From the sequence record PV112478.1: a DNA stretch of 64,000 nt; one strand, written 5' to 3'. Below, piece by piece: positions 3,499-51,819 of this stretch (position 1 is the stretch's first letter; every line of letters begins with the position of its first letter). Both the position numbers and the translations under genes were made by a program. Under the pieces are notes generated by a model. That model had not been told where the DNA came from, ran no database searches, and was given only the letters and a program-made list of their open reading frames with translations.

Positions 3499-3927
3499 AT
3501 GTCTAAAGCACGTAAGAAGAAACCCACTAAAAAGCCCGGTTACATGAAGTTACACGGGTTTCAATACATCAATGACATTATTCGGAAATCACCGAAGTTA
3601 CTCTCCGAAGCCGCCACTATAGTAGTGCAGTTCGACGCCTTAGATGAAAAAACTCTTTCTTTAGGGGAAATCCTGAAAGGGAAAGAAGAGATCAAGAAGA
3701 TAGCAGAGAAAGCACCCTCTATTCGAACGACGCTCGAAGAACTGAAAACCGATTTCGAAACGCTGGTTGCGACACCGGGTAAAAAGGAAGAAGAGCACTT
3801 CGCCGATTTGGTTGGACGTGCTGCTGAATTTATTTCAATGATCACTGAAGACGTGATTGCGCCGATGGCAGAGATCGCGGAGATTGTAGAAAAACGCATT
3901 AACCAAAAGGAAACTGTCAATGTCTGA
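3499..3927 (+). CDS. Hypothetical coiled-coil protein
   Basis: ORF track starts at TTG 3463. ATG 3499 with GAGG 8 nt upstream is the more likely start. Confidence 0.65.
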   Translation: MSKARKKKPTKKPGYMKLHGFQYINDIIRKSPKLLSEAATIVVQFDALDEKTLSLGEILKGKEEIKKIAEKAPSIRTTLEELKTDFETLVATPGKKEEEHFADLVGRAAEFISMITEDVIAPMAEIAEIVEKRINQKETVNV

Positions 3928-15939: not shown

Positions 15940-16029
15940 TGGCAGAGAGTGAGAGATTCGAACTCTCGGTACCCTTTCGGATACACTCCCTTAGCAGGGG
16001 AGCGACTTAAACCGCTCATCCAACTCTCT
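15940..16029 (-). tRNA. tRNA-Ser(GCU)
   Basis: Cloverleaf, CTCCC-CTGCTAA-GGGAG, long variable arm, G73, CCA. Confidence 0.93.
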
Positions 16030-16038
16030 ATTAAAATG

Positions 16039-16112
16039 CGACTCTTCCAGGACTTGAACCTGGGACCTACAGCTTAACAGGCTGCCGTTCTAACCAACTG
16101 AACTAAAGAGTC
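16039..16112 (-). tRNA. tRNA-Asn(GUU), CCA not encoded
   Basis: GCAGC-CTGTTAA-GCTGT; ends G73-CAT. Confidence 0.9.
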
Positions 16113-16118
16113 ATTATT

Positions 16119-16193
16119 TGGCGGTGCTACGGAGAATTGAACTCCGGTCTCCTCCGTGACAGGGAGGTATCCTTTCCACTAGACGATAGCACC
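16119..16193 (-). tRNA. tRNA-Asp(GUC)
   Basis: CCTCC-CTGTCAC-GGAGG, G73, CCA. Confidence 0.93.
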
Positions 16194-16201
16194 TTTTTGT
16201 T

Positions 16202-16302
16202 TGGTTGTTCCCTTCCGGATTTGAACCGGCAACCTCCTGCTAAGCAGTGGGCGGCGCAGTGGCCGCCGATGCAGGCGCTCTACCTAGTTGAGCTACGAGA
16301 AC
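16202..16302 (-). ncRNA. tRNA-like RNA with 30-nt hairpin-containing anticodon loop, CCA end
   Basis: D arm GCTC/GAGC, stem CCTGC/GCAGG, T arm CCGG-TTCAAAT-CCGG and acceptor TGTTCTC/GGGAACA-A-CCA. Confidence 0.7.
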
Positions 16303-16310
16303 ATTGTATC

Positions 16311-16386
16311 TGGAGCAAGCAGCGAGGTTCGAACTCGCGACCTATGACTTGGAAGGACATCGCTCTACCGACTGAGCTATACTTGC
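16311..16386 (-). tRNA. tRNA-Gly(UCC)
   Basis: Loop CTTCCAA, U73, CCA; one T-T mismatch in the anticodon stem. Confidence 0.9.
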
Positions 16387-16391
16387 GCTAA

Positions 16392-16466
16392 TGGCAGAAG
16401 CGCCTAGATTCGAACTAGGGGTACCGAGATCAAAGCCCGGGGCCTTAACCGCTTGGCTACACTTCT
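16392..16466 (-). tRNA. tRNA-Gln(UUG)
   Basis: CCGGG-CTTTGAT-CTCGG, G73, CCA. Confidence 0.9.
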
Positions 16467-16473
16467 ATAAAAC

Positions 16474-16557
16474 TGGTGGGGAAGGGTAGATTCGAACTAC
16501 CGAAGCCGAAGCAGCAGATTTACAGTCTGACCCATTTGACCACTCTGGAACTTCCCC
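16474..16557 (-). tRNA. tRNA-Tyr(GUA)
   Basis: CAGA-CTGTAAA-TCTG, variable arm, A73, CCA. Confidence 0.93.
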
Positions 16558-16754
16558 TGAATTTGGGACCCGATTATTTCAGCGCTGCATTCTTTACTCT
16601 CGGGCCAAGGAGCACTATTAGTTTCTTCTCAGGGCGTATGGTTTCCCTCTGAGACTTGCGCAATATTTGAACAGGTTGATTGTTGTCTTAACATTCCGGA
16701 GAGAAAGTTACAATCTTTGTTCATAATATATTGAATTACTTAAATTTTGATTGC

Positions 16755-17096
16755 CTACCGGAATTTCCCTACAGATAACCAGATATCAGCAACCAAAAGA
16801 ATTTGTCCGCCATATTGGGTGACGGTATTCCAACCATTGCGTTTAGCGGCTGCATTGATCAGTGATAAAAATTGGTCTCTCCAAGGTCCTTGGTAAATCT
16901 GAGAGTGGTGTATTATTCGTATATTATTCGAACTCTCAATCTTATTAAGTTCTTCTGTTCCCCTGATCATATCGAAAACGTCTTTCGACTTAATCAAATA
17001 AGCCGGATCGTTAATCGTTCGATCAGAGGCTAAAGGAAGACGATAAGAAATATGGTCAATGTCTTCTTGACTGTGTGCAAATGTTACGTCATTCAT
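16755..17096 (-). CDS. Hypothetical protein splitting the tRNA cluster
   Basis: 113-aa ORF with AAGGT RBS. Confidence 0.6.
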   Translation of the reverse strand: MNDVTFAHSQEDIDHISYRLPLASDRTINDPAYLIKSKDVFDMIRGTEELNKIESSNNIRIIHHSQIYQGPWRDQFLSLINAAAKRNGWNTVTQYGGQILLVADIWLSVGKFR

Positions 17097-17177
17097 TTTA
17101 CTTTTACCTTATACAAGTTAGCGGTCTAAACCGAAATAGGAAGACCAACAAAAACTGTGGGATGAATAATAATGAAG

Positions 17178-17251
<74 letters not shown>

Positions 17252-17256
17252 GTAGA

Positions 17257-17341
17257 TGGTGCCCAGGGCGGGGTTCGAACCCGCACGCGATAAAGCGAGG
17301 GATTTTAAATCCCTTGTGTCTGCCGATTTCACCACCTGGGC
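17257..17341 (-). tRNA. tRNA-Leu(UAA)
   Basis: AGGGA-TTTAAAA-TCCCT, variable arm, A73, CCA. Confidence 0.93.
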
Positions 17342-17346
17342 AAATA

Positions 17347-17422
17347 TGGTGGGTCCAGCAGGTTTTGAACCTGCGACCAAGCGATTATGAGTCGCCTGCT
17401 CTAACCACTGAGCTATGGACCC
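17347..17422 (-). tRNA. tRNA-Ile2(CAU, lysidine type)
   Basis: GGCGA-CTCATAA-TCGCT; D and anticodon arms match enterobacterial ileX. A73, CCA. Confidence 0.88.
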
Positions 17423-17642: not shown

Positions 17643-18500
17643 TTATTTTCCTGACGCTGTACCCTGAACGCGCGCAGAGTTCTTCAGAAGAATTGTAGAG
17701 GCATCTTCAAGGAACTGGTCGCTGTCGCCTGAGGTATTCGCTACCACCAGGGTTTTCGTGCAAGGGACTTTTACGGTCGAATTGAAAAGGATACCCGAGT
17801 CGGTTGTTGCTTTTTCGATCGTGTACACCGCTTTACCGTTCGGCAGTTTTGCATCAGCATTCCAGGAGTTGAAATCAATGATCTCGAGCCCCGAATCTTT
17901 TTGCATGACTGCGTCCAGGAATTTATTATTCCGGTCAGGTGCAGAAACCCAAAGGAACGCGTCGTATTCGCCAGTATTCACTTTAGCCAGGGAACGGATA
18001 CCGCCTTTGGCATACGTTTCAACTTTCGCGTAGTTTTTCTCCAACGTCTGGAGATACTGCCACGAAGCGTAAGATCCAGAGGTAGGTTCACCTACAGCGA
18101 TTTTAGTGCCTTCTTTTAGATCACCTTTACCGGTGACCTTACCGTCTTTCTTGACGGCGACAAAGACGCACTCACTGGCCAGTTCGCCAATGATATCAAC
18201 GTTCTGTGCTTCGTTGGCATGACGCGAACGCCAGAACTGATAAGCATCAGCTTGGGTAAACCCGATAGTGGCTTCTCCAGAGGCTACACGATCAAGGTTA
18301 TCGAGCGAGCCTTTAGAAGGGACAACCGAAGTCTGGTAACCGTACTCGCTTAGAGCACTAGCTAAGTTTACGCCATAAACGGCGTTATAAGTTAAACCTT
18401 GTTGACCGGTGGTAATAACAATTTTGCCATCGGCCGCGGATACGCCAGCACTCATGCAAAGTAACGCTACCGAAAACACGGCAAAAGCAAGTTTCTTCAT
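17643..18500 (-). CDS. TAXI-family TRAP-type periplasmic solute-binding protein
   Basis: Signal peptide MKKLAFAVF...; ITTGQQGLTY and SKGSLDNL...GEATIGFTQAD motifs. ATG 18500 with AAGGGA RBS is preferred over 18602. Confidence 0.75.
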   Translation of the reverse strand: MKKLAFAVFSVALLCMSAGVSAADGKIVITTGQQGLTYNAVYGVNLASALSEYGYQTSVVPSKGSLDNLDRVASGEATIGFTQADAYQFWRSRHANEAQNVDIIGELASECVFVAVKKDGKVTGKGDLKEGTKIAVGEPTSGSYASWQYLQTLEKNYAKVETYAKGGIRSLAKVNTGEYDAFLWVSAPDRNNKFLDAVMQKDSGLEIIDFNSWNADAKLPNGKAVYTIEKATTDSGILFNSTVKVPCTKTLVVANTSGDSDQFLEDASTILLKNSARVQGTASGK

Positions 18501-19035
18501 TTGCATTCCCTTTAAGGAAAGTATGGGTGTCAAGCGGCATAACCGCCACAGTGAATTTGAGAGGCTGACAAGTTGGCCCAACATGTGCATTAATCGTGTC
18601 ACGGAATAAAGAGGCGCCTTTGTTTCGTGCTACCTGTAAGGGTTTAAGATTAAGTTAGTTGCAAGTCAGCCCCTCAAAAGGGGCGATGACATCTACAAAC
18701 TTTCAGCTTTCCTATCTTTGGATTCCGGGCCACAGTAGGAGTAAGTTGAATTATGCCGATTTAAGGTCAGCCTTATCTGTAGATATCATCTATTGTAAAA
18801 AGACAGGCGCCTGAATTAGCTAGGCGCCTGCGTCGGTGAAGAAGTGTCGTCGTCTCTCCATTCATGGAAAGAACCTTGAAAAGGAATCACCTGTTTATCT
18901 TACCAGCCAGCCCGCATTGAGATAAAAGTGTTGTTGTGATTCCCTTGGCGTTCATTCGCAACGACAGGGGGTTTACTACCGTGAAAAGGAACCTGAAGGT
19001 TGGGTTCATAAATGACTGAGCAGAGTATTTTTTGA

Positions 19036-20101: not shown

Positions 20102-20160
20102 AAATTCCTCAATTAAAAAGTGTCTTCTACATTAAAACAGTTTACCGTAAAAAAGCATAG

Positions 20161-20188
20161 GAGAGAGGAGGGAATTCCCTCCTCTCTC
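20161..20188 (-). terminator. Perfect 28-bp palindrome terminator ending the ncRNA unit
   Basis: GAGAGAGGAGGGAA-TTCCCTCCTCTCTC. Confidence 0.65.
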
Positions 20189-20309
20189 GAATAATTTATT
20201 TATCAAAAAGTGATCTCTTTGAAAAAGAAACTTTTGTGGTAAGAAGGGCGGAGGTAAGGATATAACCATCCCCAACACCGCCCATAGCCATTCAGCTATA
20301 AACAGAATT

Positions 20310-20485
20310 TAGCGCGACCTATCTAAGAATAAGATTGGAAGTTTTATTTTATAATCTAGTGCTCTACCGGCTGAGCTATCTGCCTCCAAGAAACACTCTA
20401 TGAATGTGTCCAGGTAGGCAGAGCGGAATTCGAATCCGCGACCTCTAGAATTCTTTCCGTAAAAGAAAGAAAGTTCAGTCCGCTA
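20310..20485 (-). ncRNA. Circularly permuted tRNA mimic B (YrlA/Y-RNA-like)
   Basis: Core 20355-20449 in the order T arm (GCGGA-TTCGAAT-TCCGC), closed acceptor (TCTGCCT/AGGCAGA), D arm (GCTC/GAGC), closed by TCTAG/CTAGA. Possible outer bulged helix TAGCGGAC/GTCGCGCTA. Confidence 0.7.
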
Positions 20486-20565
20486 TTTTACTGTCTACTC
20501 TTTATCTTTAAGCGTGTGAGGCGATAAGATAAAGTTAACACTAACCATCCGAGTAGCATTATGGG

Positions 20566-20659
20566 TGCATTGATGACTGCGTCTACCAATTCCGCCATTC
20601 TCCCATAGTTTGGTGGGAGAAGAAAGAGTCGAACTTCCAGTGGGGTCATCACACCTGCA
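20566..20659 (-). ncRNA. Circularly permuted tRNA mimic A (YrlA/Y-RNA-like)
   Basis: GATGAC...GGAAG-TTCGACT-CTTTC-TTCTCCCA-CCAAACTA-TGGGAGAA-TG-GCG-GAATTGGTAGA-CGC-A-GTCATC. Confidence 0.7.
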
Positions 20660-20740
20660 ACACGGACTAACAATAAAGATAAGGTTGGCCTCAATCTTTA
20701 TTATCAATGGGCACTCGTGAGAATACCCATTACTAACACA

Positions 20741-21508
20741 TTAAGCAGTGAAGTTTTTCAGAATCACGTTGGTCAGTACTTCGCCGATAGAGCCCTGAAC
20801 AACTTCGGTGCAGTTTGCACGCATACGTGCATTAGTGACTTCAACGATCAGTTCGTCGATATCACGCAGTGCGTTGGCTTTCTGCATCGGGGTGCAGGCG
20901 CCGGAATAGCTTTTACGGGTGAAGCTACCGATTACGACGGTGCTTTCCGATTCTTTCACCTGTGCAGGGTGGTGGTCGGTAGCCGGCGCCAGGATAACCG
21001 GAGTGAGCACTTTCTCGGTTTTCGTCGTGACTTCGTCCGTCACGGTACGGAATCCGTAGGTGCTGTTGCTATCGCGTTCCCATTGTTTGGACGAATCCAG
21101 AGTAGGGGCAGCGGCGATCAGTTTGCGAAGTTCCGCCAGGCGTTTTTCCAGGCCCAGGAGTTCATCTACCGGCACTCCAGAAACGAGGACTTCGCCTTTG
21201 AACATGATGTCTGCTTTTGCTACCTGGTTAGTCAGGGCTTTTTGCAGGCGAAGGTCTTCTGCCGTGGCGAAATATTCGAAGAGGTACTGCAGCGTTTCGG
21301 CTACAGTGGTGATCACTGCCTTGCTGGTACTTTCGCTTTTTTCGATCGCGGCGTTGGCGTCGTTGTCTTCGTGCAGTTTCAGGGTTTTATCAAACCCGCT
21401 GAAATATTCAGCCGATTTATTGAATTTTTTACTGGCGTCTTCGATCAGGACTTGCACTTGTTTGGTGCGAGTGGGTTCTGCTGCCAATACTTCGTGTAAC
21501 TTAGCCAT
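20741..21508 (-). CDS. Conserved 255-aa helical protein upstream of the permuted tRNA mimics
   Basis: AAGGA RBS, strongly optimised codons, coiled-coil-like pattern; function unassigned. Confidence 0.8.
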   Translation of the reverse strand: MAKLHEVLAAEPTRTKQVQVLIEDASKKFNKSAEYFSGFDKTLKLHEDNDANAAIEKSESTSKAVITTVAETLQYLFEYFATAEDLRLQKALTNQVAKADIMFKGEVLVSGVPVDELLGLEKRLAELRKLIAAAPTLDSSKQWERDSNSTYGFRTVTDEVTTKTEKVLTPVILAPATDHHPAQVKESESTVVIGSFTRKSYSGACTPMQKANALRDIDELIVEVTNARMRANCTEVVQGSIGEVLTNVILKNFTA

Positions 21509-21580
21509 TTGATTTCCTTACGATAAGAGTGAAAATAAAGTTTGTTCATAAACTAGTTAACGACGTAAAATAAAAAAAAA

Positions 21581-21598
21581 GAAAGGGCGTACCCTTTC
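21581..21598 (-). terminator. Terminator hairpin
   Basis: GAAAGGG-CGTA-CCCTTTC flanked by A and T runs. Confidence 0.6.
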
Positions 21599-21609
21599 TT
21601 TTTGGCAGA

Positions 21610-23026: not shown

Positions 23027-24196
23027 TTAAATAAAACTTGTTTTGATCATACTTTCAGTTTCGATGAAGGTCTCCCAGTTTAATGCTTCCGCCAACGTGA
23101 TTTTCTCACGACCAGCGAAATCTACCGGTTCGAGATCAACCGCGCTCCGCGCCTTCGCAGCTTCAGTTTCATTTAACGTTCTGAATGACAGGGCTTTAAA
23201 CAAACGGCCGGGGCGAATAATTGCATTATCGACTGACTTGAGGTTAAGTAAGTTAGTTGAGATAATGAATTTGACGTTACCGGAAGTGATCCCCTCTGCG
23301 GCGTTTAATAAACCGGACATTAAGCTATTACCGTTTTCGCGACGCTCCAACATAACTAGCTGGTCTTCGGTGACGAGCCAAGTACCGTCATCCAAATCAT
23401 GGATATACGGAACAATAGATGGCGAATTGAGTACGTCCGCAGTATCCGCTACAACGACGTTATCATTTTTTTGTTCATTTTTCCACCGTATCATTTCACG
23501 AATGAACTGGCTCTTACCTAACCCTGGTGCACCGTAAAGGACTAAAACATTGTTGTTTGAATTATCAAACGCTTCCGCCAATTCCGCAGGGGATAATGAG
23601 AAATAAGGCCAGAATCCCTTAAAGTCTTTTATCTCATTTTTATCTTGCAGTCGTTTGTTCCGCGCAACGACATTACCGCCAGCATTCAGCGACAAACGAG
23701 AAACCGTTTCCGGTAAGCGGGCCGTGAAGAACGTACTGATGATTTCCCCAAACCCTTGGCAGAGATCATCAGGCCCGTAACAGAATACAAAGTTTTCTGA
23801 GACACCAGACCCAAAATAGAGCATCCCTACAATCTCTCCTCGTAGGTTAGCGAGAAGGAATGCCCCAGGAATAATTTCGGTGTAAACAAAAGTGTCGAAT
23901 TTCGAGAGGTAATTACGTAACTGATTGGAAAGCAGTTCCTCAACACTTTTCCCTAAGTCGCGTGCATTCCCTGTTAACCAAAACCCTTTCCTTGAGAAAC
24001 CCATAGGGCGATTATTGACCCCCAAGAAAATTTTGATCGCCTTTTTAACAGGGTCGCCGTTACTTCGACCTTCAACATTTATCCGGCAGTAAATATCGAA
24101 AAATTCCATCATTTCTTCTTTGAGCTTACCTGAATCGGCGCGTGCATTTGACGTAAAATCTTTAGTCAAAACATTGTTTTTACTTTCATTAGCCAT
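23027..24196 (-). CDS. AAA+ ATPase, paralog 2
   Basis: Walker A YGAPGLGKS, Walker B WLVTED, sensor-1 IISTN and Arg finger RPGR. Confidence 0.9.
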   Translation of the reverse strand: MANESKNNVLTKDFTSNARADSGKLKEEMMEFFDIYCRINVEGRSNGDPVKKAIKIFLGVNNRPMGFSRKGFWLTGNARDLGKSVEELLSNQLRNYLSKFDTFVYTEIIPGAFLLANLRGEIVGMLYFGSGVSENFVFCYGPDDLCQGFGEIISTFFTARLPETVSRLSLNAGGNVVARNKRLQDKNEIKDFKGFWPYFSLSPAELAEAFDNSNNNVLVLYGAPGLGKSQFIREMIRWKNEQKNDNVVVADTADVLNSPSIVPYIHDLDDGTWLVTEDQLVMLERRENGNSLMSGLLNAAEGITSGNVKFIISTNLLNLKSVDNAIIRPGRLFKALSFRTLNETEAAKARSAVDLEPVDFAGREKITLAEALNWETFIETESMIKTSFI

Positions 24197-24724: not shown

Positions 24725-25993
24725 TTAACGGCCGATAAAGCCGCCCTGTTTGATCTCGCTTTGCAGCGCCTGATACGCTTCCCAGTTTAATGCTTCCGCT
24801 AAGCTGAGTTTGGACACGTTACCGAAATCAATCGGAGGATGTCCTATCGCAGCGCGAGCGGCATTGGCTTGATCGGCTGTTAACGCTTTGAACGGGATGA
24901 CGCGTAAAGTACGACCTGGGCGATACAGGGCATGATCAACGTCTTTTAACGACGTGATGTTAGTTGAGATAATGAATTTGACGTTACCGGAAGTGATCCC
25001 TTCGGCAGCATTCAGTATCCCAGCCATCAGACTGTTACCCATATCACGTGCTTCGATCATTTCATGGGCGTCTTCAGTCACTAACCAGCTGTTACTTGGC
25101 ATGTCGTGAACGTAAGGTGTAAACCGCGGGGATTTAAATACCGGGTTATCGTCGCAAACAAATACGGTACCGTAAGAGTTCTCGTCTTTCCACTTGATCA
25201 TCTCGGCGATATATTGGCTCTTACCTAACCCTGGCTCGCCGTACAGAATCAGTACGTTCGAGTCACTGGCTTCAAACTCGGCTGCCATCTCACGAGGTGA
25301 TTTGGGTGCGAAGGGCCAAAAGGCTTTTGGATCGGTAACTGTGCGCCGTTGTTTCAGTGTTTTATACTGACTTTGAACATCATTGTTACCTGTTAAACAG
25401 AGCCGACGAATAGTAATATTCTTCTCTTTATTTTGGAAGCTGTTGAAAATATCTTTGAGGATTTTCCCGATCGAAAAGTCACCAACGTAATAAAATTGTT
25501 GTTGGCTACCATTATCTTCCATCTGGCAAGCACCTACAATTTTATCATCACGAAAGATAAAGAAGCTCCTGTGGCTAAATGGTTCAGTATAGATTCCGTA
25601 CTGATTCATTTTGTCCAAGAAAAGTTTCAGTACTTCCATTTCAAATTGAAAGACTGCGTCACCAAAAGGACGTTCGTAGTTAATGAACGTATAAATACGT
25701 ACCGCTTCCCTTTCAAGTAGTTGAAAGAAACGCATTAGTAATACCTGATTATTTAAGTTTTCGCTAATACGTTCTACAGTGGGGTAAAGTCCTTTAAAAA
25801 TCAGGCGGTGGAATTCTTTAATTTCTTCGTACTTTTTAGCGCGAGATGCTTCATTAAGCGGTGGGTAATTCAATAATAGCTCATGAAAAATCGCAGTACG
25901 AGAAGATAATTCAGCATTAGTTTCTTCTTCGACTGCTTCTTCCCAAGGTGCTAGAAGTTCTACTGATTCTTCGCGAAAAGCATGTAAGGACAT
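24725..25993 (-). CDS. AAA+ ATPase, paralog 1
   Basis: YGEPGLGKS, WLVTED, IISTN and RPGR. Confidence 0.9.
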   Translation of the reverse strand: MSLHAFREESVELLAPWEEAVEEETNAELSSRTAIFHELLLNYPPLNEASRAKKYEEIKEFHRLIFKGLYPTVERISENLNNQVLLMRFFQLLEREAVRIYTFINYERPFGDAVFQFEMEVLKLFLDKMNQYGIYTEPFSHRSFFIFRDDKIVGACQMEDNGSQQQFYYVGDFSIGKILKDIFNSFQNKEKNITIRRLCLTGNNDVQSQYKTLKQRRTVTDPKAFWPFAPKSPREMAAEFEASDSNVLILYGEPGLGKSQYIAEMIKWKDENSYGTVFVCDDNPVFKSPRFTPYVHDMPSNSWLVTEDAHEMIEARDMGNSLMAGILNAAEGITSGNVKFIISTNITSLKDVDHALYRPGRTLRVIPFKALTADQANAARAAIGHPPIDFGNVSKLSLAEALNWEAYQALQSEIKQGGFIGR

Positions 25994-31857: not shown

Positions 31858-34041
31858 TTAGATGATCTGATTCAAGTGTGCGGTACGTGTGCTCAATACC
31901 CTTCCCCGGAAGAGTAGCTCTTTACTCCGCCAGTAGTCGAGATGTTTATCAATGTTCATGCAAACAAAGCAATGATAACTCTGTGGGAATTTCTTCTCCC
32001 CTTTGAGTTCACGTAAACGTCCTAACGCCTGAACGTTCGCGTTCGGTGAGTCAATCGCAACGGTCAGGTAGGCTTGCGTCAAGTTAGGGATATCCACCGC
32101 GGTACCGGATTTACCAATCGTACTGAAAATGATATCCGAATCCAGTAACAATTGATAATCGTCTCCTGATGTAAAGGAGTTGATCACCAGTTCCGGGAGA
32201 CGTTTCCTGAAGAACGTGGCCAGGCGCTGGCACATCTCAATAGTCGCCGAGAAGATTAACAGCTTATGTTCCCTTTTCCTCTTCTCTAACCAGTTATCCT
32301 TGGTGTAGTCAAAAAGCGATTCTTGCCACCGCTGCTCTCGTTGCCTGTCTGCCATGATCCAGGCTTCGTACGTCGTATGACTGTACGACCCTTGACCTCC
32401 GACGACTTTCGCTTTCTGCCAATCCTTCAGATTATACTGGACTTTCACCAGATCGATATACCTACTTGGTTGCCCGCCATTTCGCCGCAGTTTTTTCGGT
32501 AAGAAGGTTTCGTAGATGAAAAGTTGAAAATCCATCTTAGCCAATAACGTAGCGGTCAAGTAGATCTTTTTCGGAACATGCGAATAGAGATCAGAGACAA
32601 AGTTCGCATGGATCTCTTTATGCGCTTCATCAATGATAACCAGACCTATCCCCAGAAACTCCCAGAGATCTCTCGGATTGATATCTTCGCAATCAGTCCC
32701 AACCACTCTCCCATTATTCCAGTTCTTGTAAAAGTCCCTCAACGTGGCTGTGGAAATGAAAATCGCCTTAACATTATCAATGCCGGTGGTCTTCGCTTCC
32801 CGTAATAAACGATAGAGCTTTACACAACCACAACACGATCGAACCTCTTCCGGTTTTAGATTGAGTTTAGCGTAAAACTCCGGTATCCATCTATCCTCGT
32901 AGCCGCCGAGTGTTACCACCGCAAAACGGGTTCCGTTATTCTTTGCCATCGCCAATGAACAAGCCGTGTTATGGGTCACGATATAGTCATCGGTGATGTA
33001 GAGATGTTCAGGGTCATCAATCATGATGCACTGAGTGGCCTCAGGCTCGCGTTCTTCGATTGAAGTAATAGCTAACCGCTCTTGGGTGAAATCGACACGT
33101 AATGTGTCCCTTGCCTCATCTAAGTAGGCAAGGCCACCATAAGCCCGTGCGGTATATTGTATTGCCTCCAACAATTCAAGGCCCCCTAAACTAACCGTAA
33201 ACTCCATTTCGTCCTGCGAGGTCTCTGTTACCATTCGGAAGTCGGCAGGTAAAGTCTGACCGAGAATGAGCGGCACAGAGAAAGAACTTTCCCCTAGCCG
33301 GTCTTTTATTTCGCGTGTCGTGATAACTTTATCTTGCTGCTCCTCGTTTTCCTGTACTGACCAGAGATGTTCCGGGTTAACATCAGTATATCGTCCATCA
33401 GCAAAGTGGATACGCCAGACGTCGGTCACGCCCTGCGGGAAGACCCCGATGACAGAAGCGAGGCGTCCCTTAGGTGTCACGACCTGTTGCCCGACTTTCA
33501 TCTCGCCCATGGTTAGCCAACCGCCAGGGACTCTGATCTTAGAAGAAAGCGTCTGAGCCTTACCAAACCCAGGCTCCGCGGTGATCGCTTTCTGGATACC
33601 GGGGCCCGAACCGAATTCAATAATCGGCACCTGGTTATCCCACGGTGTGAAGTCCATCTCAAACTCAAACTTCACCGGTTCGTACATCGGGACAACATCG
33701 ATTTCAAACGTGCAGCCATTCCATTGGTATTTTTCCGCTTCCTGTTTAAAGCGTTCCAGTGTGTTGATGTGGAAACACGTCTCTTCCGTTTCAAGGTCTC
33801 GGCGTGCGTAAACCTTGGTAGGTTCCATTCGGAATCGCCCACGTTTCTTCACTAAGTTTTTCTCAATAAAGTGCTCAGTGAATTGTCGACGGAATTGTCG
33901 GCCTTTGGCGGTATAGGCAAAAACGGAAAAGTAGTGGCTATATTGCGTGATACGTAGATCCAATGTCTTAGCCCTCACAGGTGATAATCGAATCTCGTAG
34001 ATTCTTTTCTCTAGGTATAGGTCTCTATAGGAATTACTCAC
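31858..34041 (-). CDS. SF2 helicase (phiKZ gp75-like) with intein
   Basis: AEPGFGK|T (after splicing), IIDEAH, LTAT and QALGRLR; follows the nvRNAP beta-prime C gene. Confidence 0.9.
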   Translation of the reverse strand: MSNSYRDLYLEKRIYEIRLSPVRAKTLDLRITQYSHYFSVFAYTAKGRQFRRQFTEHFIEKNLVKKRGRFRMEPTKVYARRDLETEETCFHINTLERFKQEAEKYQWNGCTFEIDVVPMYEPVKFEFEMDFTPWDNQVPIIEFGSGPGIQKAITAEPGFGKAQTLSSKIRVPGGWLTMGEMKVGQQVVTPKGRLASVIGVFPQGVTDVWRIHFADGRYTDVNPEHLWSVQENEEQQDKVITTREIKDRLGESSFSVPLILGQTLPADFRMVTETSQDEMEFTVSLGGLELLEAIQYTARAYGGLAYLDEARDTLRVDFTQERLAITSIEEREPEATQCIMIDDPEHLYITDDYIVTHNTACSLAMAKNNGTRFAVVTLGGYEDRWIPEFYAKLNLKPEEVRSCCGCVKLYRLLREAKTTGIDNVKAIFISTATLRDFYKNWNNGRVVGTDCEDINPRDLWEFLGIGLVIIDEAHKEIHANFVSDLYSHVPKKIYLTATLLAKMDFQLFIYETFLPKKLRRNGGQPSRYIDLVKVQYNLKDWQKAKVVGGQGSYSHTTYEAWIMADRQREQRWQESLFDYTKDNWLEKRKREHKLLIFSATIEMCQRLATFFRKRLPELVINSFTSGDDYQLLLDSDIIFSTIGKSGTAVDIPNLTQAYLTVAIDSPNANVQALGRLRELKGEKKFPQSYHCFVCMNIDKHLDYWRSKELLFRGRVLSTRTAHLNQII
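32968..33558 (-). mobile_element. 197-aa class-3 mini-intein in the helicase Walker A motif
   Basis: Starts Ala (AQTLSSKI), block B EHLW, block F TQCI, ends VTHN followed by Thr+1. No intact LAGLIDADG motifs. Confidence 0.9.
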
Positions 34042-49917: not shown

Positions 49918-51819
49918 TTAACGACCGCCGAAACCGTAAGAAGAACGGGCACGAGAACGGAAACCTGCACCGTCGTAGCCGTTGGATTCGTAACGAGAAG
50001 TATAACCACGACGGCTGGTACGGCCATCCTGAGTAATACCATCAGCGGTAACCACCATGCCTGCTGCAGACAGTGCGCGGGTCAGGCCGAACAGCCAGTT
50101 GGCGTTCACTTCGATGACGTCTGCACGGTCGGTGATCTGATACTGACCGCCGGTGTAGTCTTCGATGATTTTTTCCATCTGGTCCATACGGACTTGCAGA
50201 TCGATCGAATCGTCGTTCAGGCAACGATCGTAATCAGCAACCACCTGCGGAGATTTCAGACCGAAGTTGGTCAGAATTTCGTAGTAACCGATTTCACGCA
50301 GGTCACGTTTATGACCCTGTTCGTCGATCCAAGTGCCCAGCAGTTGCGGCATGTCGCGGATGATACCCACGTCGTACAGATCTGAGGTGTTCATGATGGT
50401 AGAGAAACGATCGCCGGAGATGTTGTCGGCGGCTTCGATCAGCACGTCAACAGCTTCTTTACGGTTCGGGTTCGTTTCGTCGCACGCATCAACCAGCAGC
50501 TGCAGCAGCGGGGTGTTGATGGAAGAACGCGGGATCTGGATCTGAACGATCTGGCTGTTCTCACGAACAACGTTAGCCACCAGGCCGGCCCATTCGTCGT
50601 CGTTCAGAACTTCCGGGAGTTTTTCAAACTCGCCTTTCAGTTCGTAGGTCAGAGCTTCAGCGGTACGCAGCGCGCCTTTGGTGTTCAGCGGACGCAGACC
50701 CTGAATCAGAGCCGGTTCAGTCATCAGTGCAGATACCTGTGCCAGAGAGAACATCAGGTATTCAGGAATCGCCACGCATTTCAGATCGCTGATCACCAGA
50801 GCGATACCGTAGATACGGGTATCGAAGTCTTCCGCTTTCTTTTTGCGCAGTGCAAAGAAACTGTTGGACTGCTCTTCTTCGCCTTTGTAATACAGGTCGA
50901 CGTGGGAGATCAGACCGGCCAGCTGAGTGGACTCACGCTCGGACAATACGTTAACAATACCGCCACGACGTTCGTCACGCGGCGCCACCATCAGATCAAC
51001 AACGATATCGGCGCGATGCGGCATTTCGGTGATGTCGTCAGCAACGTCACCTTGATGGAATGCGATGTTCGCCAGCAGATCGTTATTTTTCAGGTCCAGC
51101 GCCGCAATGCTGAACTCGTTAGTGGTCAGGATCGCGTTAACGGAATAGATGATCTGGTTGATCACCGCAGAAGCGATACGCTCCAGTTCTGCGTCGGTCG
51201 GTTTGTCCAGGAAGATCGGGGACGCCGCCAGATGCTGAACCTGGCCGGTGAATGCCGGGTTGGACAGGGCAATCAGATCGTCCAGGGACTCTTTATAGCC
51301 GATCGCTTCGTACTGGTCGTTAGCGGTGGTAGTGAAACGCACGGTGTGGTCACGACCAACCTGCACGGCCTGTTTCGGCATCACGGTGTTACCCACGAAG
51401 ATCACGGTAGACGCGAAGATCATGCCGTTGTCTTTCAGACGGGCAGCGATGACCGCAGCGTCCAGTTTCATTTGGGTATCTTTGCCTGTTGCCGGCGTTA
51501 CCGTCCATTCCAGGACACCGTTCAGGCTGATCGCGGCGCTGTGCTGTTTCTGGATTTCTTTGGTCAGTTCGACGAATTTGGCTACGTCGCCTGCCGCAGA
51601 GTTCAGGGACAGTACTGGCGCATCTTTACGGAAGTTATAGGATGAAGTCACTTTTTTCTCCTGACGGGAATCATTTTCGTTGGAACGGGTGTAAAAGGAA
51701 CGGCGGCGTGCAGAGGATTCTTCCTGGCGACCTTCGTCGCGAGAAGTTTCCTGCGCACCAGTTTCTACTGCTGCTTCTTCTGCTTTGTTTTTGTTGTGAT
51801 CGTCATCACGTAAGGCCAT
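49918..51819 (-). CDS. chmA: Chimallin, major phage nuclear shell protein
   Basis: 633 aa, directly upstream of the nvRNAP beta-prime gene and near the DNA polymerase. Strongest host-optimal codon bias in the window; disordered N- and C-terminal segments; AGGAG RBS. Confidence 0.8.
   Translation of the reverse strand: MALRDDDHNKNKAEEAAVETGAQETSRDEGRQEESSARRRSFYTRSNENDSRQEKKVTSSYNFRKDAPVLSLNSAAGDVAKFVELTKEIQKQHSAAISLNGVLEWTVTPATGKDTQMKLDAAVIAARLKDNGMIFASTVIFVGNTVMPKQAVQVGRDHTVRFTTTANDQYEAIGYKESLDDLIALSNPAFTGQVQHLAASPIFLDKPTDAELERIASAVINQIIYSVNAILTTNEFSIAALDLKNNDLLANIAFHQGDVADDITEMPHRADIVVDLMVAPRDERRGGIVNVLSERESTQLAGLISHVDLYYKGEEEQSNSFFALRKKKAEDFDTRIYGIALVISDLKCVAIPEYLMFSLAQVSALMTEPALIQGLRPLNTKGALRTAEALTYELKGEFEKLPEVLNDDEWAGLVANVVRENSQIVQIQIPRSSINTPLLQLLVDACDETNPNRKEAVDVLIEAADNISGDRFSTIMNTSDLYDVGIIRDMPQLLGTWIDEQGHKRDLREIGYYEILTNFGLKSPQVVADYDRCLNDDSIDLQVRMDQMEKIIEDYTGGQYQITDRADVIEVNANWLFGLTRALSAAGMVVTADGITQDGRTSRRGYTSRYESNGYDGAGFRSRARSSYGFGGR

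Follow-up and report, generated by a model that had tools for sequence, protein, structure and literature searches.

The closest described relatives of the RNAs treated here are the YrlA RNAs, which have been recognized by a tRNA-like domain, a Ro60-binding stem with the motif GNCGAAN0-1G in its 5' strand and a TROVE gene no more than 4 kb away (Chen et al., 2014; PMC4201824). Mycobacterium smegmatis has the only YrlA whose acceptor stem is 7 bp long; RNase P cleaves this RNA both in vitro and in vivo, and it carries a CCA (PMC4201824). A phage Ro60-Yrl complex is also known: in Thermus phage phiLo, phiRo60-Yrl1/Yrl2 recruits host PNPase (PMC12135203). Bacterial and phage Y-like tRNA mimics have so far been defined and sought only through the neighbourhood of Ro60. 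Another association of such RNAs is described here from Klebsiella phage LPKP23 (PV112478.1, 300,747 bp). The stretch analysed, called the window, comprises 64,000 nt and is 100% identical to about positions 236,748-300,747 of that record, as given by the match coordinates. On its minus strand, a gene for a 255-amino-acid protein of the family DUF7873 (20741-21508), which a first-pass annotation of the window had singled out, is followed by two permuted tRNA-like RNAs. This is a conserved two-part cassette, in which a DUF7873 gene precedes one or two RNAs of this kind. The RNAs add a novel form to the YrlA-type tRNA mimics, one that lacks the Ro60-binding module. The pairing appears to be undescribed in the searchable literature; no description was found in publications on DUF7873, jumbo-phage non-coding RNAs, phage permuted tRNAs and tRNA mimics.

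Linkage of DUF7873 genes to permuted RNAs

Each RNA module consists of a T-arm, a closed 7-bp acceptor hairpin, two nucleotides and a D-arm, which amounts to a tRNA that is open at its anticodon and sealed at its acceptor end. The scanner used for this layout required the T-loop consensus and a 5-bp T-stem, directly followed by a 7-nt strand complementary to a strand 3-120 nt further on and, 2 nt after the acceptor, by a D-arm with GG. Eighty viral loci and 11 loci from metagenome-assembled genomes were fetched, and seven loci from isolated phages were added later. In 78 of 85 non-identical loci, the strict scanner found a same-strand module within 1.5 kb 3' of the gene, whereas the rest of these loci gave a background of 0.049 per 1.5 kb. 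The scanner made 170 matches, versus 17 in shuffled DNA. The distance of the module past the stop codon is narrowly distributed around a median of about 150 nt. A covariance model, R1, was built from a subset (A3) of 12 short-loop modules, because a MAFFT alignment of all short-loop modules (A2) misaligned the 3' halves of the D-arms. The comparison of homologues that the first-pass annotation had proposed bears out a link to permuted RNAs: scanner and R1 together place a module within 1.5 kb downstream, on the strand of the gene, in 87 of 90 distinct loci, which stem from phages of Proteobacteria, Actinobacteria and Cyanobacteria.

Distant isolated phages gave the same result. All seven (Gordonia phages Ronaldo and Phendrix, Arthrobacter phage Racecar, Rhodococcus phage NiceHouse, Vibrio phage D497, Rhizobium phage RHph_Y65 and Pseudanabaena phage PA-SR01) have one or two modules 190-780 nt downstream of the gene, in a space that is mostly unannotated or filled with small hypothetical open reading frames (ORFs) in their records. 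Some 90 phage lineages that are otherwise non-syntenic have retained the adjacency. All-against-all clustering revealed no other conserved neighbour gene, the best non-antisense ORF cluster being present in 6 of 88 loci.

The RNA was also sought without reference to the protein, by a pattern (T-loop, 11 nt, CCA, gap, generic D-arm) run over viral contigs. Among 124 matches, 108 have non-complementary acceptor strands, like the junctions of tandem tRNA genes, and ARAGORN assigned the match in contig L126 and several matches with 6 of 7 acceptor pairs to such junctions as well. Ten matches are genuine permuted modules. Five of these lie 122-259 nt behind a DUF7873 gene, one is beside a TROVE/Ro60 gene and one directly follows a DUF2828+DUF7788 (vWA) gene, whose family is called "Ro-like RNA binding protein" in some actinophage records; the other three have no obvious partner. 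This suggests that TROVE, DUF2828 and DUF7873 proteins are alternative partners of one RNA class. Indirectly, the case for DUF7873 taking the place of Ro60 rests most strongly on the occurrence of the same RNA chassis with at least three neighbouring protein families.

Since tandem tRNA junctions can mimic modules, as the 108 matches illustrate, and score 20-45 bits with R1, the adjacency might be a by-product of tRNA arrays. In 54 of 88 loci, tRNA genes lie within 6 kb, and 264 of these 268 tRNA genes are on the same strand as the cassette. The acceptor strands of true modules are, however, complementary (97-100% paired), and ARAGORN found no tRNA pair flanking the four DUF7873-linked modules that were checked. 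Further, the 34 loci without any tRNA gene within 6 kb still mostly have a module, and its distance from the stop codon varies little. This explanation is thus extremely improbable.

Two other elements were observed near DUF7873 cassettes. The viral contig L026 holds a circularly permuted transfer-messenger RNA (tmRNA; RF04321, 73 bits) at 3591-3800 on the plus strand, 2.2 kb upstream of its DUF7873 gene. Small RF-1-domain ORFs (ArfB/peptidyl-tRNA-hydrolase-like, with GGQ; cluster c13) are present in four loci, e.g. at 4160-4528 of L071.

Conservation, types and processing of the RNAs

The helices of the RNA covary. An alignment of 103 distinct modules to R1 shows pairing of 97-100% in the T, acceptor and D helices, except at the fourth D pair (76%), and most helix pairs are represented by four to six base-pair types. 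The closing helix, which resembles an anticodon stem, is 75-89% paired.

Three types of module can be distinguished. The D-arm of type A is tRNA-Leu-like and its discriminator nearly always A; that of a second type is tRNA-Glu-like and preceded by UC, and the third type is generic. Many loci, including that in the window, carry a type A module followed by one of type B, with their T-arms about 200 nt apart. Mapped on the DUF7873 tree, the RNA type requires 21 changes, as against 35-44 in 200 label shuffles. The RNA type therefore tracks the protein tree, and protein and RNA have been inherited together.

This joint inheritance bears on the proposal that the modules are free-standing tRNA decoys or sponges, which would soak up host enzymes that bind the elbow or acceptor end of tRNA while DUF7873 acts in the same pathway and does not bind these RNAs. 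Such enzymes would include PNPase and RNase P as well as toxins that target tRNAs in defence or modify their CCA, and the modules keep what such enzymes would recognize, namely the acceptor stem, T-arm, D-arm and often N-CCA, without an anticodon loop. The frequent location of the cassette in phage tRNA arrays (54 of 88 loci, with 264 of 268 tRNA genes on the same strand) would fit such a role, as would the acidity of DUF7873 and the existence of some modules that have no partner protein. A decoy would leave unexplained, however, why one protein gene has stayed immediately upstream across lineages with nothing else in common, and why the RNA type follows the protein tree. It is accordingly an unlikely explanation, although the least unlikely of the rivals considered here.

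N-CCA is encoded behind the acceptor 3' strand by 68 of the 103 modules, where 1 in 64 would be expected. Short-loop modules leave the CCA single-stranded, and their loop mostly ends in UAU before G1. In long-loop modules it pairs with UGG within a coaxial extension hairpin, in which a region CAUUC...AGAGUG is conserved. Module 2 of the window is of the long-loop kind and has ACCU instead of ACCA. By analogy with the M. smegmatis YrlA, we infer that many phage modules may become two-piece tRNA mimics with a CCA end.

The identity of such mimics was also considered. An alanine (tmRNA-like) identity was rejected, as the alanine identity pair G3:U70 occurs in 2 of 103 modules. Escherichia coli leucyl-tRNA synthetase requires A73 and tertiary features of its tRNA. 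Because the Leu-like type A modules keep A73, their aminoacylation is conceivable, and they might be charged in this way.

The cassette in phage LPKP23

The product of 20741-21508 on the minus strand is a full-length match to Pfam DUF7873 (PF25283) over residues 1-251 (E = 2.7e-72; 243.8 bits versus a cut-off of 27). Its strong codon optimization, which the first-pass annotation had pointed out, was borne out by a frequency of optimal codons (Fop) of 0.74 against a window median of 0.50. On an E. coli-type list of optimal codons, the gene ranks second among 64 ORFs, the gene of the nuclear-shell protein alone standing above it. A 260-amino-acid ORF on the opposite strand (20717-21499, plus strand) is an antisense shadow of the DUF7873 gene and an artefact of ORF listing; similar ones occur in related loci (clusters c1 and c7).

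Both terminators that had been proposed to flank the unit were found on the minus strand. At 21576-21603, the intrinsic terminator of the upstream gene (a 12-bp stem followed by a T run) forms the 5' boundary of the unit, and a strong intrinsic terminator at 20161-20188 (a 12-bp stem with eight GC pairs, then a T run) forms its end. No terminator-like site lies between 21576 and 20188 on this strand. Read from the sequence, the 5' untranslated leader spans 21509-21575 and holds the ribosome-binding site AAGGA (21515-21519). No promoter was identified in this leader, and a sigma-70 scan gave three sites versus 2.8 expected by chance. In 63 of 73 loci there is likewise no terminator between the gene and the first module. 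Co-transcription of the DUF7873 gene and the RNAs is likely because of the bracketing terminators and these 63 loci, but it is not certain, because the authors of the FBKp24 genome predicted a promoter between the gene and the RNAs of that related phage.

An alternative is a role in cis, in which the modules would be no independent RNAs but 3'-end processing or stability signals of an abundant DUF7873 mRNA. An RNase P cut and a tRNA-like CCA end would shield the message of a gene that is very highly codon-optimized, and the modules are placed as such signals would be, on the same strand, a median of about 150 nt past the stop codon and mostly with no intervening terminator (63 of 73 loci). Two tandem modules of different tRNA ancestry at a conserved spacing of about 200 nt, however, exceed the needs of a 3'-end signal, as do the lengthy closing stems and additional conserved hairpins. 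The spacing of gene and module tolerates up to 1.3 kb of inserted sequence, and the same RNA type is known as a trans-acting partner of Ro60 (PMC4201824; PMC12135203). A role in cis is considered improbable, and slightly more so than a decoy.

The RNA region downstream of the gene is strongly structured. The fold of the 596-nt stretch 20150-20745 (minus strand) has a z-score of -10.3 against dinucleotide shuffles, none of 100 shuffles being as stable. Permuted tRNA mimics had been expected over some 500 nt; two modules are indeed present, in a structured region that extends over about 550 nt and also holds additional conserved hairpins. Identity of LPKP23 to FBKp24 is 91.8% over the non-coding stretch 20150-20740, 88.5% in the coding sequence and 60-69% in the flanking genes.

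Along the minus strand, the region begins just past the stop codon with two hairpins (20669-20731; minimum free energy fold by RNAfold), the second of which bears the variant UUAUCUUUAUUGUU of the family motif UUAUCGUUAUCGU. The first tRNA-mimic RNA, of type A, follows at 20547-20667 and was supported by scanner, R1 and fold; its 5' and 3' ends form a long imperfect closing stem. The scanner places its core at 20579-20638, with the T-arm GGAAG/CUUUC, the 7-bp acceptor UUCUCCC/GGGAGAA and an acceptor loop that starts with A-CCA, and R1 matches it at 20570-20653 (34.8 bits, E = 1e-7). Its D-arm, GCG-GAAUUGGUAGA-CGC, is one that we take to resemble the D-arm of E. coli tRNA-Leu. An inter-module hairpin, CUUUAUCUU...AAGAUAAAG, with a UUAUCUU motif was located at 20500-20534 by RNAfold and sequence. 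It is followed by a side hairpin 5' of module 2, UCUUUC-UUUUACG-GAAAGA (20452-20470). The second tRNA-mimic RNA, of type B, occupies 20352-20453 (R1 55.3 bits, E = 3e-14; scanner core 20361-20439). It has the closing stem UCUAG/CUAGA, the T-arm GCGGA/UCCGC, the D-arm GCUC-AGCCGGUA-GAGC and a 7-bp acceptor, UCUGCCU/AGGCAGA, which is extended by a 30-nt hairpin. RNAfold places more hairpins, at about 20245-20300, in the 3' part of the region (20189-20351).

The heptamer TTATCGT (consensus UUAUCGUUAUCGU) is enriched 15-fold 3' of DUF7873 genes and occurs in 30 of 83 loci. Ahead of each module, motifs of this type form part of hairpin stems; in the window, their variants are at about 20669-20682 and 20522-20533, and one subfamily shares a terminal hairpin with the loop CGGCAGGUACGCACG. 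The motif hairpins and the CGGCAGGUACGCACG hairpin may be sites of protein binding or processing. These conserved features were noted in the downstream regions of loci L013-L016, L020, L027, L035, L039 and L042.

The annotated suppressor tRNA

In FBKp24, LPKP23 and Centimanus, a tRNA-Sup/Stop(TTA) has been annotated in this region, and ARAGORN calls a tRNA-Stop(tta) at 20413-20496 (minus strand). If this were a genuine ochre-suppressor tRNA, its adjacency to the protein gene would be incidental. Two tRNA finders support the call, as tRNAscan-SE also reports a tRNA-Sup(TTA) according to the FBKp24 paper. The called cloverleaf borrows the T-arm of module 2 and takes the side hairpin 20452-20470 as its anticodon arm. 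By sequence reading, its acceptor stem pairs at five of seven positions, leaving two mismatches, and its anticodon loop, UUUUACG, has a pyrimidine (C) at position 37. The Rfam tRNA model does not reach its gathering score at 20413-20496, where it stays below 29 bits and below a 24-bit partial match of a tmRNA model of the same clan. In a 99%-identical relative, in which U33 is replaced by C, the ARAGORN call is lost. Read in permuted order, by contrast, the same nucleotides give the T-arm together with a perfect 7-bp acceptor and a canonical D-arm, in a layout that is conserved and covaries in about 100 loci. A true suppressor tRNA is thus exceedingly unlikely, and the published "suppressor tRNA-Sup-TTA" is in all likelihood a spurious call overlapping permuted module 2. 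The corresponding annotation in Klebsiella jumbo phages is hereby corrected.

The DUF7873 protein

Full hidden Markov model searches group DUF7873 into 2,275 clusters at 50% identity, and a word-index search gave 232 matches. The protein is a single domain of about 250 amino acids with no fusions in all of the best 150 of the 2,275 representatives. Phages of 45-200 kb and of unrelated types also encode it; no T4-type phage was found among the matches.

An AlphaFold2 model made with a 30-sequence alignment (predicted local distance difference test score 89.3; predicted template modelling score 0.61) has an alpha/beta fold. The helical protein expected in the first-pass annotation is therefore only in part what was found: long helices at 4-30, 69-96, 114-132 and 207-232 are predicted to pack on a sheet. 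A predicted beta-hairpin (159-198) has 16 residues per strand and bears at its tip the near-invariant P-A-T-D-x-H-P-A-Q. Further invariant blocks are PVDELLGLE (113-121), TTKTEK (161-166) and ARMRAN (227-232). Foldseek searches of PDB and BFVD with the model returned nothing at E <= 0.001, and sequence and profile searches of PDB gave no match. PHROGs, NCBIfam and PADLOC hold no family that covers the protein. Neither a TROVE or vWA match in Pfam nor a Foldseek match to Ro60 structures was obtained.

Independence from Ro60 and RtcB

Among the features that define YrlA (RF02553), the permuted tRNA-like domain is present, as seen with the scanner, with R1 and in the covariation of 103 modules. 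It is the only one of the three, because the Ro60 motif is at chance level and no TROVE gene was found nearby. The motif GNCGAAN0-1G occurs within 80 nt upstream of 6 of 104 modules, which equals the chance rate of 5.3% per 80 nt. The Rfam YrlA model matches module 2 at 20328-20455 (minus strand) with 37.6 bits (E = 2e-6), below its gathering score of 69, and it was not reported on module 1. No YrlA reached the gathering score in 11 related loci, and locus L014 gave no match even at E <= 1. At gathering thresholds, Rfam reported only tRNAs in the window and the 11 loci, apart from the permuted tmRNA of L026.

The Ro60 protein is equally absent from view. No TROVE match was obtained in the 10 ORFs scanned of the 14 in the window with at least 380 amino acids. 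The first-pass annotation had recognized neither Ro60 nor rtcB in the window, and this holds genome-wide: when all six pieces of the LPKP23 genome were searched by tblastn for TROVE, DUF2828 and RtcB, nothing scored better than E = 0.5. With no TROVE or DUF2828 gene detected in the 300-kb genome and the motif at chance, a Ro60 encoded elsewhere, which that annotation had named among the findings that would undo its proposal, does not account for the RNAs. Neighbour clusters that recur in several loci include no TROVE gene among their top representatives, which were scanned against Pfam. A tblastn search of phage records was made with the Ro60 homologue of L131, which has TROVE and vWA_Ro60 domains. 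None of the 366 phage records with a Ro60 homologue is from Klebsiella or Serratia, and by genus counts at least about 58 of 75 DUF7873 phage records lie outside these 366. The cassette is thus independent of Ro60.

These results also bear on the view that the modules are ordinary YrlA RNAs that use host Rsr (Ro60) and PNPase, DUF7873 being unrelated to them. The sub-threshold YrlA match of 37.6 bits would agree with this, as would the recruitment of host PNPase by known phage Ro60-Yrl complexes (PMC12135203). The tight linkage is, however, to DUF7873 and not to TROVE, the Ro60-binding motif is at chance (6 of 104 modules) and the YrlA gathering score was reached in none of the 11 loci. Moreover, Rsr is patchy in the phyla spanned by the hosts. 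Use of host Rsr is therefore highly unlikely.

Similarly, RtcB is not part of the system, because none was detected in LPKP23 and the RtcB of FBKp24 (gp230) is encoded about 130 kb from its cassette. FBKp24 gp229 (563 amino acids; segment 170000-180000), which adjoins RtcB, was considered as a hidden Ro60 and rejected, as it has no Pfam or NCBIfam match. A link to RtcB was rejected as well, since LPKP23 keeps gp229 (49% identity; segment 50001-100000) and no RtcB was detected there.

Proposed function and significance

The best-supported mechanism is that DUF7873 and the RNAs form a Ro-independent ribonucleoprotein, which on balance we consider somewhat more probable than all its alternatives combined. 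An abundant DUF7873 protein would be encoded ahead of the YrlA-type RNAs, probably on the same transcript, and would be their dedicated partner, in the role that Ro60 (TROVE) or DUF2828 plays in other phages. Host RNase P may cut many of the RNAs 5' of the 7-bp acceptor stem, giving a two-piece mimic with an N-CCA 3' end. The particle could then show tRNA elbow and acceptor features to host RNA decay or repair enzymes, to tRNA-targeting defences or to the translation apparatus, and the phage would benefit, as with the Thermus phage Ro60-Yrl complex and PNPase.

Several observations weigh against this mechanism. The CCA position is paired in many long-loop modules, which disfavours a universal processing to a free CCA end. 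Three genuine modules with NCCA (L146, L216 and L217) have no DUF7873, TROVE or DUF2828 gene nearby, and because they have no recognizable partner protein, such RNAs may work alone. A terminator-like site separates the gene from the first module in 10 of 73 loci, and the promoter predicted in FBKp24 points in the same direction. The protein has no recognizable RNA-binding fold, the recurrent Foldseek matches being weak, low-probability ones to PUR-alpha, a single-strand nucleic-acid binder. It is also mildly acidic, with an isoelectric point of 5.5 (median of 6.0 over 30 homologues). Finally, genomic evidence of this kind would be the same for a complex in which protein and RNA are bound as for a functional pairing in which they do not touch.

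A broader interpretation is that DUF7873 and its RNAs constitute a widespread new class of phage ribonucleoprotein, a non-homologous counterpart of Ro60-Y RNA or SmpB-tmRNA, in which an RNase P-cut, two-piece CCA mimic, perhaps aminoacylated in the case of the tRNA-Leu-like modules, engages host translation or tRNA surveillance. This is put forward tentatively, as a possibility that is more doubtful than the ribonucleoprotein itself. DUF7873 gains its first functional context. With 2,275 clusters in phages of at least three bacterial phyla, the family is a neighbour of Y-like tRNA mimics as faithful as Ro60, in phages for which a Ro60 was not detected. Tractable, non-pathogenic models for viral tRNA mimicry include Gordonia terrae phage Ronaldo, Arthrobacter phage Racecar and Rhizobium phages.

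Genomic context in LPKP23

LPKP23 is a jumbo myovirus of the FBKp24 (Maaswegvirus) group. It forms a phage nucleus, as judged from its gene for the 633-amino-acid nuclear-shell (chimallin) protein at 49918-51819 on the minus strand (phrog_4795, E = 1e-44), which has the highest Fop in the window (0.83). Shell and tubulin genes were reported for FBKp24 in the paper on that phage. The link between cassette and phage nucleus that the first-pass annotation had remarked on is not general to the family and is incidental, because DUF7873 occurs in unrelated phages of 45-200 kb.

An array of nine tRNA genes lies at 15940-17422 on the minus strand. At 16206-16302 on the same strand, a 97-nt Rfam tRNA match (38.9 bits) has no ARAGORN call and could represent either a degenerate copy or a tRNA interrupted by an insertion or intron. 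The array is adjoined by an unusual auxiliary gene (17643-18602, minus strand) for a TAXI/NMT1-like periplasmic solute-binding protein (phrog_6856; Pfam NMT1_3), whose product has an apparent N-terminal signal sequence, judged by eye. Two seemingly paralogous AAA-type ATPases with long identical C-terminal stretches in common are encoded at 23027-24196 and 24725-25993 on the minus strand; the former matches phrog_14322, and FBKp24 encodes several more. The LPKP23 record also annotates a KptA/Tpt1 RNA 2'-phosphotransferase (95675-96244) and a RelA-like pyrophosphokinase (33089-33793).

Comparison with known systems

The DUF7873 cassette is most similar to the YrlA/Rsr system. The RNAs share the same permuted order of variable region, T-arm, closed acceptor stem, D-arm and a closing helix like an anticodon stem, they often occur as two in tandem beside one protein gene, and phage-encoded versions of both systems exist. 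The 7-bp acceptor stem is likewise that of the M. smegmatis YrlA (PMC4201824). Unlike YrlA, the DUF7873-linked RNAs have no Ro60-binding motif, fall below the Rfam threshold and have no TROVE gene in the locus or genome, and the neighbouring protein is an unrelated alpha/beta protein of about 250 amino acids with no known fold. In addition, CCA is genome-encoded in about two-thirds of the DUF7873-linked modules, which distinguishes them from the RNAs of the YrlA/Rsr system.

Two-piece tmRNA and its partner SmpB offer a second parallel. Both genes encode, in this order, a T-arm, the acceptor 3' strand with CCA, a loop and the acceptor 5' strand. Both products would be expected to be cut into two base-paired pieces, and a small dedicated protein serves, or would serve, as partner. 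Partial, sub-threshold matches to Rfam tmRNA models are consistent with this likeness. The DUF7873-linked modules differ from tmRNA in having a full D-stem and in the rarity of G3:U70 (2 of 103), and DUF7873 is unrelated to SmpB. ARAGORN called no tmRNA in the window, and no tag reading frame was identified, although no systematic search for one was made.

Phage T4 encodes species 1 and 2 RNAs, which are stable non-tRNA RNAs in a phage tRNA array and undergo tRNA-like processing. In these respects they may be comparable to the modules. The DUF2828/DUF7788 (vWA) system belongs to a different protein family, and DUF2828 was not detected in the LPKP23 genome. It has the same organization, with a phage protein gene directly followed by a permuted module with NCCA (L107). 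The analysis suggests that permuted tRNA mimics are a general RNA chassis with interchangeable partners, among them TROVE, DUF2828 and DUF7873.

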